Origin: Blastocystis sp. Blastoise
Lineage: Eukaryota; Protista; Bigyra: Opalinata
Direction of reading: 5' to 3'
DNA: 64,000 nt
Assembly (NCBI GenBank): GCA_039096225.1
Contig: JBBPEB010000003.1
Coordinates: forward strand, 62,001 to 126,000
Position numbers and translations under genes: made by a program
The notes under the pieces: model-generated
What the model saw: the letters and a program-made list of their open reading frames with translations, nothing else
Database searches by the model: none
Told to the model about the DNA's origin: nothing
Shown here: positions 8,101 to 27,135 of the stretch, in pieces
Layout: each line of letters starts with the position of its first letter
Numbering within the stretch: the first letter of the stretch is position 1

Positions 8101-8255
8101 TTCTTACTAATAAGTGAGAGAATGCTGTGTATTTTTATTTTTCTCATTATTCGTTTTTAATTCATTTTTTATAAACTACTTTTATTACTGAAATATGAAT
8201 AAAAAAATAATGTTGTTAATTCTAACACTATAAACAATTTTTGTTTTTTTGACCC

Positions 8256-8757
8256 TATTTCCCGTAAGAGAAACAACAAAATGACTGGAGTTTTTTAGTC
8301 AAAAAAGTGTTGGCCTAAACCCGAGAGCAAAAGCTCCGCCAACTTGTCGAGTTTCTCTCTTTTTGACAAGAATAACTTAAAAATAACTCTAAAAAATATA
8401 TTGTTTATTTATATAATCATAGACATTCTAAATATTGACTATTTTACAGTGTTTTATGATTTAAAATGACTGTTTAAAACCAAAAAGACTTTAATTTTTT
8501 CTCTGAAGTCTATAATTCAGGAATGGATTACATGAGTGAGAAGTTTTTAAAATTTGTGTATTCTCTGAGTGATATATTATCATTTCAATTATTCTCGTCA
8601 AGTCCTTTTACAATAAAAACCATTATACAGCCTAAACCAAAACACACCTAAAAATTTCTTCTTTTTTATTTCCCAAGGAAAAAACAATAAAATGACTTGA
8701 CTTTTTTATTCATAATTTTTTAGCCTAAAGACGACAACATTTCTTTCAGCCAACTAC
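8256..8757 (+). repeat. Degenerate ~90-bp direct repeat (about 8256-8345 and 8667-8757) in the left subterminal region
   Basis: tatttcccgtaagagaaacaacaaaatgactggagttttttagtc..gcctaaa..gccaact versus tatttcccaaggaaaaaacaataaaaatgacttgacttttttattc..gcctaaa..gccaact. Confidence 0.65.
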
Positions 8758-9350
8758 CCTAGAAAGTCAAAACAATTAAAAATTCAAAAAAGAAAAGTAA
8801 AACGGAAGCTCTTGTTTTTGTTTATTGATTATCGTCAATAAACCTGTTTTTAAAAATATGACTTTAGAATATCATTCAGGACGTGATTTATAGTTCAGGG
8901 TATCGTTTTAAGGTTTAAAATAGCTTTTTTGAGAGAATTCATAATTATGTCCTAAACCAAGAGGAGTTGTGCGTTTTTATCATCTCTGTTGTTAGACATA
9001 CTTATACACAACATACTCAGCTTACAAAATTGTTTTTCTTGCTTGTTGTGATTTTCACTCATTTTTGAATATTTGATTTTTAGTCTCAAAAGTGGTATAA
9101 AGTGTCTATACATGCCTGTAAGAATCGATTTTAATACTATAAAGTCAAAAATATTAAAGAAAAGTGACAGTGAAAAAAAGGAGGGAAAAAATATTTTTTT
9201 GAGTTTCTAGATATTCCCGCAAAAATGATTTTTCTTTTAAGACCTGAATACACCCATACGCTATTGAGCCTATTGACTTAGAAAATATTTCATTTGTTAC
9301 ATATTTTTTTTATTTTTATTCTATTTTTATTTGCCTTTATTTTTAAAAAT

Positions 9351-12300
9351 AGAAGCTCATTTTAACTTCAGACTGTTCCCTTGTATGTATATTGCTATTT
9401 TTTATTCTTTATCCATATTAACATTCTCCCATTCTCTAGCATGTATAGGTTCCTGCTCGTCCGTGGTTATAAGAGTCCTCTTCAGTCCACGTCAACAACG
9501 TCTATGATGTCAAACTACTTTCAAAGTATATATGTATTTATTTATTTTTATAATTATCTCTTATCTTTTTATTTTTTATATTGCTGTAATATTATATGAT
9601 AAAATACTTATCGTATATTCATTCTATCTATTATTAACTTTCTTTTTTTTTTCTTGAATTAGAATTCTAATTCATTTTATTATTTATTTTCATTATTTTT
9701 ATATTTTTATTTATTATTATTTATTTATTTAGGTTGTTTTCTACTGTTTCTGTTGGTTATCTTTCCCTATGACTCAACATCACCAAATTCATTTTTTTCT
9801 ATTAGGTATGTTTATTTATTTATTTATTTATTTATTTATTATCTAGTTCTTCTTTATTTCTTCTTCTTACACAAAATGATTCCTTCTTCTCTCTTCTTCA
9901 TTTTCTTCCTTCTACACTTTTATCTCCTTATTTCTTCATCTTCTTTCTTTATTACTTCTTCCTATGCCTTGTCTCCAGCCTATATCCTTGTCTCTCCCTT
10001 TGATTCATTATCTTCCTCAGATCTTCATTTTTCTTTTATTTTTTCTTCTATCTAAATTCCTTTATTTTTTCTTTTTTTTAATTATACCTCTCTCTTATCT
10101 TCGCTTCCCTTTTATATCACTCTTTCATTACTCTTTCTTAATCACTATTCTATTTACATTGTATTTCGTTATGTCTTTTTCTTTTATCCTGTTATCCTCT
10201 TCTCCTTATTCTATACTTCTTTTTCCTCGACATGTATTAGTGTATACCCTCCTTTTCTTCCTCTTCCTCTTCTTCTTCTTCTTCTCCATATAATTCTTTG
10301 CTTTTTTCAGATCTTCATCTTCTTATTTATATTTATATCACTATTTATTATATATATAGTTCTCTTCTATTATTTGCCTTCCTCCTCTTCCTTCTTTCTA
10401 TTCTTCTCATACTTCTTCTCTCCTCCTTCTGATTCCCTTTTTTTTACTGCCCTATTTTCCTTCTTTATCTTCCTTCTCTCCTCTTTCTGTATAATTCTAT
10501 CTCAATCTTCCTTCTCTCCCTCTCTATTCTCGTATCCATCTTTATCCTTATTCTTTTTCCATTTATTTCTCTCTGTCCCTGTCTATTTTATCTTATATGT
10601 CTCTTTCTACCTTCTTGTTTCCTTTTATATTTCCTTCTATGTCTCCTTTTCCACTTTATATCTACTTTTTCTTCTCTCTCTCCTTCTCTCTATTATTATA
10701 TATTCTTATGTTCTAGTTATCTATTTTCTATTTTTATTTCTATCCTTTCATTCTCTATATTGTTATATCTACTTCTATTTTGTCTCTTTTCTTCTATCTT
10801 AATCTTCTATTTAATCCTTTTATTTCTTTCTATATATCTATATCTTCTTGTCTCTAACTTCTTTCTTAATCTCTTTTATATCCTTCTATTTCTCCTTCTA
10901 TCTCTCCTTCTTTCTCCTTTTCTATTTTCTTCTAACCATCTTTTTTCCTATTTTTCTCTTTCTATCCCTATTATCTCATTCTCTATCTTCTTCTATATTC
11001 TTCTTCTTTCATCTTCTCTCCTTCTTCCTTCATCTTTCAATTTCCTTCTCTATCTTCCTTTTATCTCAGCTACTCCTTCTGTCTCAATCTTCAGTCTTTC
11101 CTTTTCTTTCTCTTTCAACATCATTCTATCTCTCTGTATTCCTATATTTCTCTTCATATTTCTCTATCCTTATCTATCTCATTCTACCTCATTTATGTGT
11201 CTCAATCTCATTCTCTATTTCCTTCTATTTTCTCTTATCTACTTATATCTTCGTATATTTCCTTATATCTACGTATATCTACTTCTCTATCTTATTATAT
11301 CTCCTTCTAACTTAATTTACTTCCTCTTCTTCTTTTTCTCCTTCTATCTCCTCTTCTATCTCCTCTTTATTCTCCATCATCTTCTATCTACTTCTCTATC
11401 TCCGTCTACATCCTTCCATCTTACTACATCTCAATCCGCTTTCTCTCCTTGTATATCCTTTTATATCCTTTTATCTCTCTTTCTCTCTTATCCTATTTAT
11501 TTTTCTTATTTCTATCCATTTCTATCTACTTTATCTTCTCTATCTCATTCTATTGTATCTATATCATTCTCTTATCTTTCTATCTCCTTCTATTTTTAAT
11601 CTTTTCTATCTACTTCTCCTTCTCTATTTCCTTCTATTCACTTCTATATACATCTCATTCTTCAAATCATTCTATATTCTTCCCTTCTTCCTTTTAACTC
11701 TTGCTATTTGTTTTTATTTTAATCTACTTCTCCTTCTCTCAACTTTTATCTACTTCTCCTTCTCTGTTTGATTCTATCTCCTCTCTATCCATATTTTCCT
11801 TTTTATTAATATTTATCTCCTTCTCTATATCTTTCGGTATTCTTCTATCTCTATCTATCTATCTATCTATCTATCTATCTATCTATCTATCTATCTATCT
11901 ATCTATCTATCTATCTATCTATCTATCTATCTATCTATCTATCTATCTATCTATCTATCTATTTATTTATTTATTTATCTCAATCCCCTCTCCCCTTCTA
12001 TATATTTTATTACCTTCTATGTCTCTACCCTATTTCCCGTTTTCTTTCTGTCTCTTTCTTCTCTCATATACTATTGTTCTATCTTTTCTTTTTTTATTCT
12101 TCTTTTTTTTCTTCTTTGTTTTTTCTATTATACTTCTTTATCTTGCTTTGTCTCTCCTTCTCTCTATGTCATTCAAATTATAATTCTCTCTATCATTCCC
12201 TATCGTTTTCTTTGTATGTATTTTTCTTTCTAATTTTTTTCTATATAAATTTATCTTTCTTGATATTCACTTCCTGCTCCTTTTTTCTCCCTTCTTCGTC

Positions 12301-25310: not shown

Positions 25311-26420
25311 AAAAGACCAACTTTCAAATTTTTCTTTTTTTTTGAAATGAAAAAAATTACCGTGTATTACAAAATTTGACTGTCTGAATTTTTGTTTTTG
25401 ACTTTTTTTATAAACATCATAAAACAAGTTTTTTCATTTATATTATGAGTCTACATGCTCTATTGAACACCGTTTAGCAATTTTTTATTGAAAATAAGTC
25501 AACATTTCCAAACCACTAATGTTAAGAAAACAAACATAAAAAGCAGCTCTGTTTGTCAAATAAAGACCCTATTGACTAAATATAAACTTAAAAACCTCAT
25601 ATTAACTCTATATGAGAAGAATAAAGAAAAATAGAAAAATAATATCGACTTAGAATTATTTTTTTTTGTTTTTCAGAAAAATTCCTTCTCTAAACCACTT
25701 TTTTAGAAGGTCAAATTTTTAAAGAAAAATTATTGGACTATTTTAAAAATTAACCAACCAAAACTCTTAAATAGGCCACCCTGCCTCATAGTGGGTTCCG
25801 TTGCTGTCGTTGTTGTTAATTGGAGAGAATGGCTTATCAAAGGTATGTATATATATTAATTATATTCCTTTTTATTACTTATACTATTTAATATATCTTT
25901 TATAGGATGGTTCCTTGTCTTCGCTTCCTTTCTTTTCTTGTAATTGTCGTGATAAAAGGTATATATTTTTATTTTATTATTATTTTAAAATGTTATATAT
26001 ATTACTAATAGTACTAGTTAATTAATATCATCTCTTTATATAGGTTGGCTTGGTTTGGGTTTCCAATTAAAGACTGAAACTGTCCTGCTGCTTAAATATT
26101 ATTAAATATTATATATACTAAATTATATTGTTAATTATATGTTTTATTATCTTTTTTTAAATATTTATTATATTGTTTTTTATATATTTATTATTCTTGT
26201 TTTTATTATATGTTTTTAATTATAATTTGATGTTATTTAATTTGCTTGTTTTGTTGTATCGTTGATTATTACACCACAAAAATAATATAAAGACCAATAA
26301 ATATAGAATAAAGGATGAAAATAAGCATTTCTATTGGCCAATTATCTATTTTAAGGTGTGTCATACTTATTCACTGCTCTGTTGATAAAAAAACCCACTG
26401 AAACTCTGACCAAAAATGAC

Positions 26421-26663
26421 ACTGCTCCACCACTGGGGAAACCAAACTGAACTTTTCAATCATCTTTTTACTAAAGTCTACCCAAAAAAATTTACTGCTC
26501 CACCACTGGGGAAACCAAACAGAAATTTACAATTATCTTTTTACTAAACCTTGCTTAAAAATTCCAACTGCTCCACCACTGGGGAAACCACACTGAAATT
26601 TACAAACACCTTTTTACTAAAGTCAACCCAAAAAACTTCACTGCTCCACCACTGGGGAAACCA
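26421..26663 (+). repeat. Four subterminal repeats with an invariant 24-nt core ACTGCTCCACCACTGGGGAAACCA at exact 73-bp spacing
   Basis: Cores at 26421, 26494, 26567 and 26640. The intervening 49-mers are related but diverged. The array ends about 50 bp inside the outer right end. Confidence 0.95.
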
Positions 26664-27135
26664 GTTTGTTATAACCAAAAACCTTTTCACAGACCCCAAA
26701 AAATGCTTATAGTGTAAATAGTATATTATAATGTATTTCTTTAGTTATTATAGTTTTAAAAGAATGATAATAAATTTTTTAAGTTTATTATTATATATGA
26801 CTAAAACAAAACGACGAATGATAAAGAAAGCAATCTTTGTGATATATATATATATATATAATTGATTGTGTTAAGCTTCAAATATGTTCATATAAAGAAA
26901 TAAATATAGATTGTAAATATATATAAGAAAAATATATATATTTATAATATATAAAGAAATGAAATTAAATTTATATAATATAACAAAAAGAAATGGTGAG
27001 CAATATATATAAAGAATAAAACAAATATATATATAAAGAATAAAAAGTAGAAAAAAATATATGTATCGAAAGAATAAAATATAGAAATCATAATAAAGAT
27101 GTAAAAATCATAATAATAAACAATATATATATTGT

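Follow-up and report, generated by a model that had tools for sequence, protein, structure and literature searches.

Three nested class II transposons very probably make up an 18.5-kb gene desert in Blastocystis sp. Blastoise

Introduction

What does the 18.5-kb 'gene desert' between a GT31 galactosyltransferase gene and a ZIP transporter gene of Blastocystis sp. Blastoise consist of? The desert lies in a 64,000-nucleotide stretch of DNA (hereafter the window) that covers positions 62001-126000 of contig C33 in a 34-contig assembly of 33.3 Mb with about 22% G+C. The strain has been described as Rus-B ('also Blastoise'), of Russian tortoise origin, with 33.3 Mb in 33 contigs and 23.1% GC; transposable elements make up 5.6-7.5% of the genome by RepeatModeler and are given only as bulk repeat fractions (PMC10690189). 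A preliminary description, made from the letters of the window, took the desert for two nested non-autonomous CACTA-type elements of different families, built on a common layout that includes one tRNA mimic each.

Our analysis makes it very probable that the interval is a three-level stack of class II transposons: a CACTA element inserted in another CACTA element, and a Helitron inserted in the inner one. The two nested, non-autonomous CACTA-type elements of different families are upheld, since both are multi-copy, have 2-3-bp target duplications and share their termini with transposase-encoding relatives. The common layout is not, and this removes a tempting but wrong inference of an RNA-bearing CACTA 'design'. 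An interval that was unexplained is now parsed fully into mobile elements; all three represent new families, within superfamilies already known, from a protist that has been studied little. For the AT-rich tortoise lineage of Blastocystis, CACTA/CMC and Helitron transposons are here described at the level of families for the first time. Some of the families look young (99.9% identity over the 6.4 kb compared, identical Helitron termini, intact transposase frames), which bears on why tortoise genomes are about double the size of those from human-associated Blastocystis.

Nesting of the elements

The nesting can be read directly from a second copy of the outer element, on contig C34. This copy (8,666 bp, AAC flanks) stands in an unrelated context and does not contain the inner element; it aligns colinearly with the window copy, at 97.5%, 99.6% and 94% identity. 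At the insertion point it reads ...CCGGGGGTTCCG..., with one GGT, where the window has GGT, the inner element and GGT. The single GGT makes the C34 copy a paralogous empty site and proves the nesting. The preliminary description had allowed for the termini being single-copy and without an empty allele; both families turned out to be multi-copy, and the empty site sought for the inner element exists in this paralogous form. A similarity search found no transposase remnant in the outer element, in the inner element or anywhere else in the window.

The stack was probably built in three steps. A non-autonomous CACTA element of about 8.5 kb, of the CMC superfamily, would have entered a TAA site. 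A second, unrelated non-autonomous CACTA element, then about 7.3 kb long (9,970 bp today), would have entered the outer one at GGT, after the split of the window's outer element from the C34 copy. Finally, a 2.68-kb non-autonomous Helitron would have entered the inner element; it is placed last because its termini are 100% identical to those of many other copies. Both CACTA elements would move by cut-and-paste through DDE transposases supplied in trans by autonomous relatives, which would recognise the CACTATG... termini and cut with a stagger of 2-3 bp.

The neighbour of the stack on the left is the GT31 galactosyltransferase open reading frame (ORF; 5612-7183, minus strand) and that on the right an exon of the ZIP transporter (27136-27750, minus strand).

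The inner CACTA family

The inner element and the parts of it that recur in other family members are as follows.

15824-25793, plus strand: inner non-autonomous CACTA element, 9,970 bp, with GGT flanks at 15821-15823 and 25794-25796
15824-16655, plus strand: inner backbone, End A, with the terminal repeat at 15824-15837; 97-98% identical to three other copies
19337-20146, plus strand: inner backbone after the Helitron insertion; 82-83% identical to copies L026 and L027
24618-25793, plus strand: inner backbone, End B, with the terminal repeat at 25780-25793; 82-87% identical to 9 other End B copies

The termini and the GGT duplication had been described correctly. The sequence CACTATGAGGCAGG occurs without mismatch at 15824-15837 on the plus strand and at 25780-25793 on the minus strand (2 matches in the window vs 0.05 expected), and GGT stands at both ends. 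The terminal inverted repeat is a perfect 14 bp in the window copy and 13 bp family-wide; beyond CACTAT it diverges from that of the outer element, again as claimed.

The genome contains 25 matches to this repeat with at most one mismatch, vs 0 in the control. They fall into two distinct ends, A and B, which form eight End A/End B pairs 6.3-50 kb apart. All eight pairs have matching 3-bp flanks (CTA, AAT, ATA, AAT, AGA, TAT, AAT, GGT), an outcome with a chance of about 1.6e-12. The window copy has its first 832 bp, an internal segment of about 820 bp and its last 1.17 kb or so in common with copies of 6.3 and 7.1 kb. With the large copies on C7, C19 and C23, what it has in common is limited to its first 88 bp and to ~1.17 kb at its end. 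The nine End B matches include those of all three autonomous elements.

One copy of the inner subfamily is found twice with identical flanks, at C21:1081863-1089100 and C22:47719-54953, near contig ends and in opposite orientation. It may be an assembly duplicate or part of a duplicated subtelomeric-like region.

The outer CACTA family

The outer element (8226-26714) consists of two arms on either side of the inner one.

8223-8225, no strand: left target-site duplication, TAA (sequence match)
8226-8243, plus strand: left terminal inverted repeat, CACTATAAACAATTTTTG; at least 35 genomic copies start their homology exactly at 8226
8226-15823, plus strand: left arm, ending with the left GGT (15821-15823); 97.5% colinear with the C34 copy
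9848-13300, plus strand: almost G-free, pyrimidine-rich low-complexity tract with a GC skew of -0.8, intrinsic to the outer family
25794-26714, plus strand: right arm, from the right GGT to the terminal repeat (26697-26714); identity with the C34 copy 94%
26412-26663, plus strand: 73-bp subterminal tandem repeat in 3.4 copies, with four exact copies of CCACCACTGGGGAAACC
26715-26717, no strand: right target-site duplication, TAA (sequence match)

TAA followed by CACTATAA stands at 8223-8233, and TTATAGTG followed by TAA at 26707-26717. The termini and the TAA duplication are thus present as first described, with an inverted repeat longer than claimed (16 of 18 bases, CACTATAA[A/G]CA[A/T]TTTTTG) and with boundaries common to the family. 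A genome search found the window's 18-mer only once more, as a pair, in the C34 copy. The consensus terminal repeat of the family, CACTATGGACATTTT (15 bp), has 33 + 33 genomic matches vs 0 and 3 in the controls, and these form about 31 pairs, mostly 8.6-8.8 kb apart. The outer family has about 31 copies of about 8.7 kb, which are transposase-free. The left arm of the window copy is 94.6% identical to the C22 copy over its first 5.1 kb, and the right arm 79-90% identical to other family copies.

The flanks of 16 fetched family copies match over 2 bp in all 16 cases and over 3 bp in 10; with the window and C34 copies added, the counts become 18/18 and 12/18. At least 12 matches of the third base in 18 would arise by chance with P = 0.003. 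A duplication of exactly 2 bp would give fewer such matches and one of exactly 3 bp would give more, which suggests that the stagger is 2-3 bp. The 17-mer CCACCACTGGGGAAACC of the subterminal repeat has four matches vs 0.02 expected, all at the right end of the outer element; no subterminal repeated motifs are evident in the inner element.

Several observations concern individual copies or the interior of the family. An almost G-free pyrimidine strand of about 4 kb (0-5% G) is conserved inside the ~31-copy family and is 94.6% identical between subfamilies; the same composition is seen in the C22 copy and in copy L051, at about 1700-5700. The ORFs in this tract, spread over several frames, are compositional artefacts. 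Two copies stand head to tail at C13:909068-917646 and 917632-926219. Only three terminal-repeat matches are listed for these two copies, and the right terminus of the second is not seen among them as a separate match at the junction. A genuine tRNA-Glu(TTC) gene, identified by ARAGORN, lies about 130 bp outside the C34 copy (L047:297-369, minus strand); this is a single case.

Transposases of the related elements

The inner family was expected to have a transposase-encoding autonomous partner, and it does. The pairs on C7, C19 and C23 each enclose an open frame of 867-887 aa. The ORFs read are 822 aa (C19) and 829 aa (C23) long and 99% identical to each other. An intact CMC/CACTA-type transposase of about 825 aa is present in three of the eight pairs.

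A direct Pfam scan of this transposase and of the small ORFs of the autonomous copies gave no match. The protein is related (E ~1e-33) to a 744-aa paralog that matches Transposase_21 and, weakly, DUF4218. We built a profile (A1) from seven Blastocystis paralogs and searched it against 1.8 billion protein representatives, which returned 405 proteins. Seven of the ten distant matches scanned contain PF02992 (42-301 bits); five of these also have DUF4218 and one has DUF4216, as in the architecture of plant CACTA TnpD proteins. A protein-feature search (Atlas) gave Transposase_21, DUF1258 and Plavaka clusters as neighbours, with scores of 0.92-0.96. Residues D43, D134, C153, C156, H448, H452 and E472 are invariant across the seven aligned paralogs, a pattern suggesting a DDE core with the CMC-specific C..C and H..H motifs, in which the acidic residues would be catalytic.

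The outer family has a candidate autonomous partner at C23:362896-378401. This 15,506-bp pair has the consensus terminal repeat of the family and a CAT duplication, and it encloses an uninterrupted 676-aa ORF that matches PF02992/Transposase_21 at 28.2 bits (cut-off 28.6) and DUF4218. The full-length transposase match is 739 aa, with one in-frame TAA (an intron or a break). Only about 163 bp and about 510 bp of termini are common to this pair and the 8.8-kb family. With its consensus repeat and fitting ORF the pair stands as a candidate, the window repeat being diverged from that consensus. In both families, the internal sequences of the non-autonomous members are unrelated to those of their partners.

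The gene of the 744-aa Transposase_21 protein occurs in three 100%-identical copies (C5:498572-500803, C19:220551-222782 and C23:203725-205956; L039-L041). We considered it as a partner and rejected it, as its 3.75-kb common block has no evident CACTA termini. The block may belong to some larger element, or the gene may have been domesticated or duplicated.

A Helitron-like element within the inner element

Between the first two backbone segments of the inner element lies an insertion of another kind.

16656-19336, minus strand: non-autonomous Helitron-like element, 2,681 bp, with a precise empty site in the inner-family copies L026 and L027
17672-18698, no strand: 489-bp tandem repeat in 2.1 copies, inside the Helitron-like element

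The element has TC as its 5' end on the minus strand, and its 3' end there is a GC-rich hairpin with CTAG behind it (16656-16710). Comparison with the sister copies L026 and L027 shows that it was inserted into an A run without target duplication. Each terminus has at least 40 near-identical genomic copies (114 and 152 candidates), and about 10-20 other copies match each of the queried termini at 100% identity. At least eight pairs of termini are 2,673-2,689 bp apart, and the 2.68-kb unit is present independently in at least ten other places. The genome contains 51 matches to Helitron_like_N (PF14214) with open frames of about 1,560-1,640 aa. Some of these RepHel genes sit inside the biggest pairs of the inner family, which accounts for the large size of these pairs.

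The 489-bp tandem unit also borders the C23 copy of the inner family on the outer side of its End A (L029:2-510), at 95.7% identity.

Two tRNA-like cloverleaves and the question of a common layout

The preliminary description had assigned a tRNA mimic to each CACTA element. The two sequences are the following.

13551-13619, plus strand: tRNA-like cloverleaf 1, intrinsic to the outer family; fold z -3.9; 38 genomic copies
16841-16908, plus strand: tRNA-like cloverleaf 2, part of the Helitron-like element; fold z -3.3

Both fold as cloverleaves, in agreement with their naming, but neither is recognised by the standard tools: ARAGORN found 0 tRNA genes in the window, and Rfam, applied with its gathering scores and again with E<=1, no RNA family. 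An alignment of ten variants (A2) with 22 pairs has 99.5% of its cells paired, vs 33-46% with slid partners, and eight of the 22 pairs changed on both sides. The cloverleaves are thus real and covarying, and this is equally expected if they descend from two different tRNAs. Cloverleaf 2 lies 116 bp from the queried hairpin-end segment of the Helitron (16656-16720), a spacing that is constant in every copy compared. Five Helitron-borne copies were compared, and its anticodon loop varies between them.

A covarying tRNA-like cloverleaf is carried here by transposon families that are not related to each other. It is conceivable, if rather doubtful, that the 68-69-nt cloverleaf is a selected module acquired or exchanged by unrelated transposon families and not a decaying tRNA pseudogene; the stems kept through eight double changes count in favour of this. 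The role of such a module might be that of a B-box element for TFIIIC/Pol III, of a boundary in chromatin or of a signal for processing by RNase P/Z.

A further claim was that both CACTA families keep a selected layout—a tRNA-like RNA, a downstream A/T-rich block and terminal spliced transcripts—after the loss of the transposase. Each element as it stands does hold one cloverleaf, with identical T arms; the cloverleaves covary as described; and the autonomous copies of the inner family have a B-box-like 11-mer in a weak cloverleaf. Yet the second cloverleaf and its block belong to the Helitron-like insertion, which has a precise empty site in sister copies and exists elsewhere as an independent 2.68-kb unit. 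The supposed structural RNA module of the inner element is thus absent from its sister copies, and the candidate partner of the outer family (C23:362896-378401) has no B-box motif. In a pairwise comparison, the outer and inner elements have no more than about 86 nt in common, a stretch around the cloverleaves that is 74% identical. Nor are the two 'blocks' homologous, and the cloverleaf of the autonomous copies is weak, with a z of only -1.4. We consider a selected layout very unlikely and, for this locus, largely refuted. The common design is an accident of nesting, because cloverleaf 1 belongs to the outer family, cloverleaf 2 is Helitron-borne and the rest is unshared. Each cloverleaf is the passenger of a different family, one of the outer CACTA family and the other of the Helitron, and they do not form a common CACTA module.

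The weak cloverleaf of the autonomous inner-family copies is located at L028:2980-3056, and in L029 the B-box is at 3538. It sits about 40 nt downstream of an internal CACTATG and could represent either a tRNA-like sequence of a third type or the terminus of a further nested element. A 65-nt variant (L087:18-82, that is C16:809297-809361, and L086) has the acceptor, D and T arms of type 1 and an anticodon arm like that of type 2. This hybrid suggests a wider and diverse tRNA-like family.

Points against nested CACTA and Helitron elements, and other explanations

Several points weigh against the interpretation of the interval as stacked CACTA and Helitron transposons. The direct Pfam scores of the Blastocystis proteins are marginal (28-31 bits; cut-off 28.6), and the inner-family ORF has none. 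Since direct matches are marginal or absent, the assignment to the superfamily rests on the profile search, the termini and the duplications. The duplications of the outer family are of 2 or 3 bp and not strictly of 3 bp. The subfamily of the window's outer element has two copies only, with a diverged repeat (CACTATAA... vs the consensus CACTATGG...), and its mobilisation by the C23 partner is putative. The Helitron was inserted at T^T on its own strand and not at the canonical A^T; we take T^T to be the target reported for Helitron2/Helentron-type elements. Finally, the case for mobility is an indirect one, made from sequence; the other tortoise isolates, at only 56% amino-acid identity, are too distant for intergenic comparison.

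The elements might instead belong to another cut-and-paste superfamily (PIF/Harbinger or Zator, with 3-bp duplications, or a Transib-like one with CAC... ends), the Transposase_21-like genes being nested passengers. The large members do contain many nested elements, and the C7, C10 and C23b pairs enclose RepHel genes, so that a gene's location within a pair is no proof of ownership on its own. However, three independent inner pairs hold CMC frames of one near-equal match cluster, and the two compared are 99% identical. In two inner pairs the frame lies 4.9-5.7 kb from End A, and an outer-type pair also holds a CMC ORF. Moreover, CACTA termini with 2-3-bp duplications are a hallmark of CMC (PMC4079192). 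We regard membership of another superfamily as highly improbable and retain the assignment of both elements to CMC.

The outer call had been singled out as the more vulnerable, and its 11-mer including TAA is by itself within chance, as it occurred in 23 of 100 shuffles. The call stands because the copies, boundaries and duplications of the family rescue it. That the outer 'element' is chance AT-rich 8-bp inverted ends plus TAA in ordinary intergenic or low-complexity DNA has a negligible probability: its termini are AT-rich, but there are about 31 copies with sharp common boundaries and flank duplications, one of them the near-identical C34 copy with its AAC duplication in an unrelated context.

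Comparison with known transposons

Among the closest parallels of the two CACTA elements are En/Spm and its defective derivatives dSpm/I, plant CACTA elements of the CMC superfamily. The likeness includes the 5'-CACTA...TAGTG-3' termini, the 3-bp target duplication (8/8 in the inner family) and a transposase akin to Transposase_21/DUF4218 (TnpD/Tnp2 type). In both systems the non-autonomous derivatives have only their ends in common with the autonomous element, and the subterminal direct repeats at one end of the outer copy may be a further likeness. There are also differences. The host is a stramenopile gut protist, and the terminal repeats are unrelated beyond CACTA. We identified no TnpA-like second gene, although no search aimed at one was made. 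The non-autonomous elements are 7-9 kb long with an interior unrelated to that of the partner, and are not simple internal deletions. The duplications of the outer family vary between 2 and 3 bp.

Chapaev and Mirage, two animal lineages of the CMC superfamily, have CAC...GTG ends, duplicate 2-4 bp of their target and encode a DDE transposase in which residues specific to CMC are conserved (PMC4079192). The Blastocystis elements resemble these in their CAC...GTG termini and short duplications, but no TWA target preference is evident in them, as the duplications include GGT, AAC, GGA and CAT. The Atlas neighbours of the transposase include clusters with DUF1258, most frequent in nematodes, and we assume that this domain is linked to Mirage.

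The third element resembles non-autonomous Helitrons in its 5' TC, its 3' GC-rich hairpin with CTAG, the lack of a target duplication, the many identical copies and the abundance of RepHel genes in the genome. It differs from them in the T^T insertion, the tRNA-like cloverleaf and the 489-bp tandem repeat.

Cargo of the inner element

Between its internal backbone segment and End B, the inner element carries a block of different origin.

20097-24320, minus strand: cargo block of the inner subfamily; 87-91% identical to a repeat of at least 20-25 copies

The exon-like ORFs of the window in this region (20339-23833) had no Pfam match when scanned singly. Tpn1 and Tgm-Express are CACTA elements that carry gene fragments, and the inner subfamily is like them in having a foreign gene-derived block, related to a UTP20_N-bearing repeat, between CACTA ends. 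The difference is that the block is itself a repeat of at least 20-25 copies outside CACTA ends, so that it need not have been captured from the host gene by the inner element.

Full copies of the related repeat exceed 6.4 kb and carry a UTP20_N-like ORF (83 bits; L095:241-861, minus strand). Four of them (C13:148300-154700, C8:901750-908150, C33:178300-184700 and C18:459600-466000; L095-L098) are 99.9% identical over 6.4 kb. The UTP20_N repeat is either a very young mobile element carrying a gene fragment or an amplified gene.

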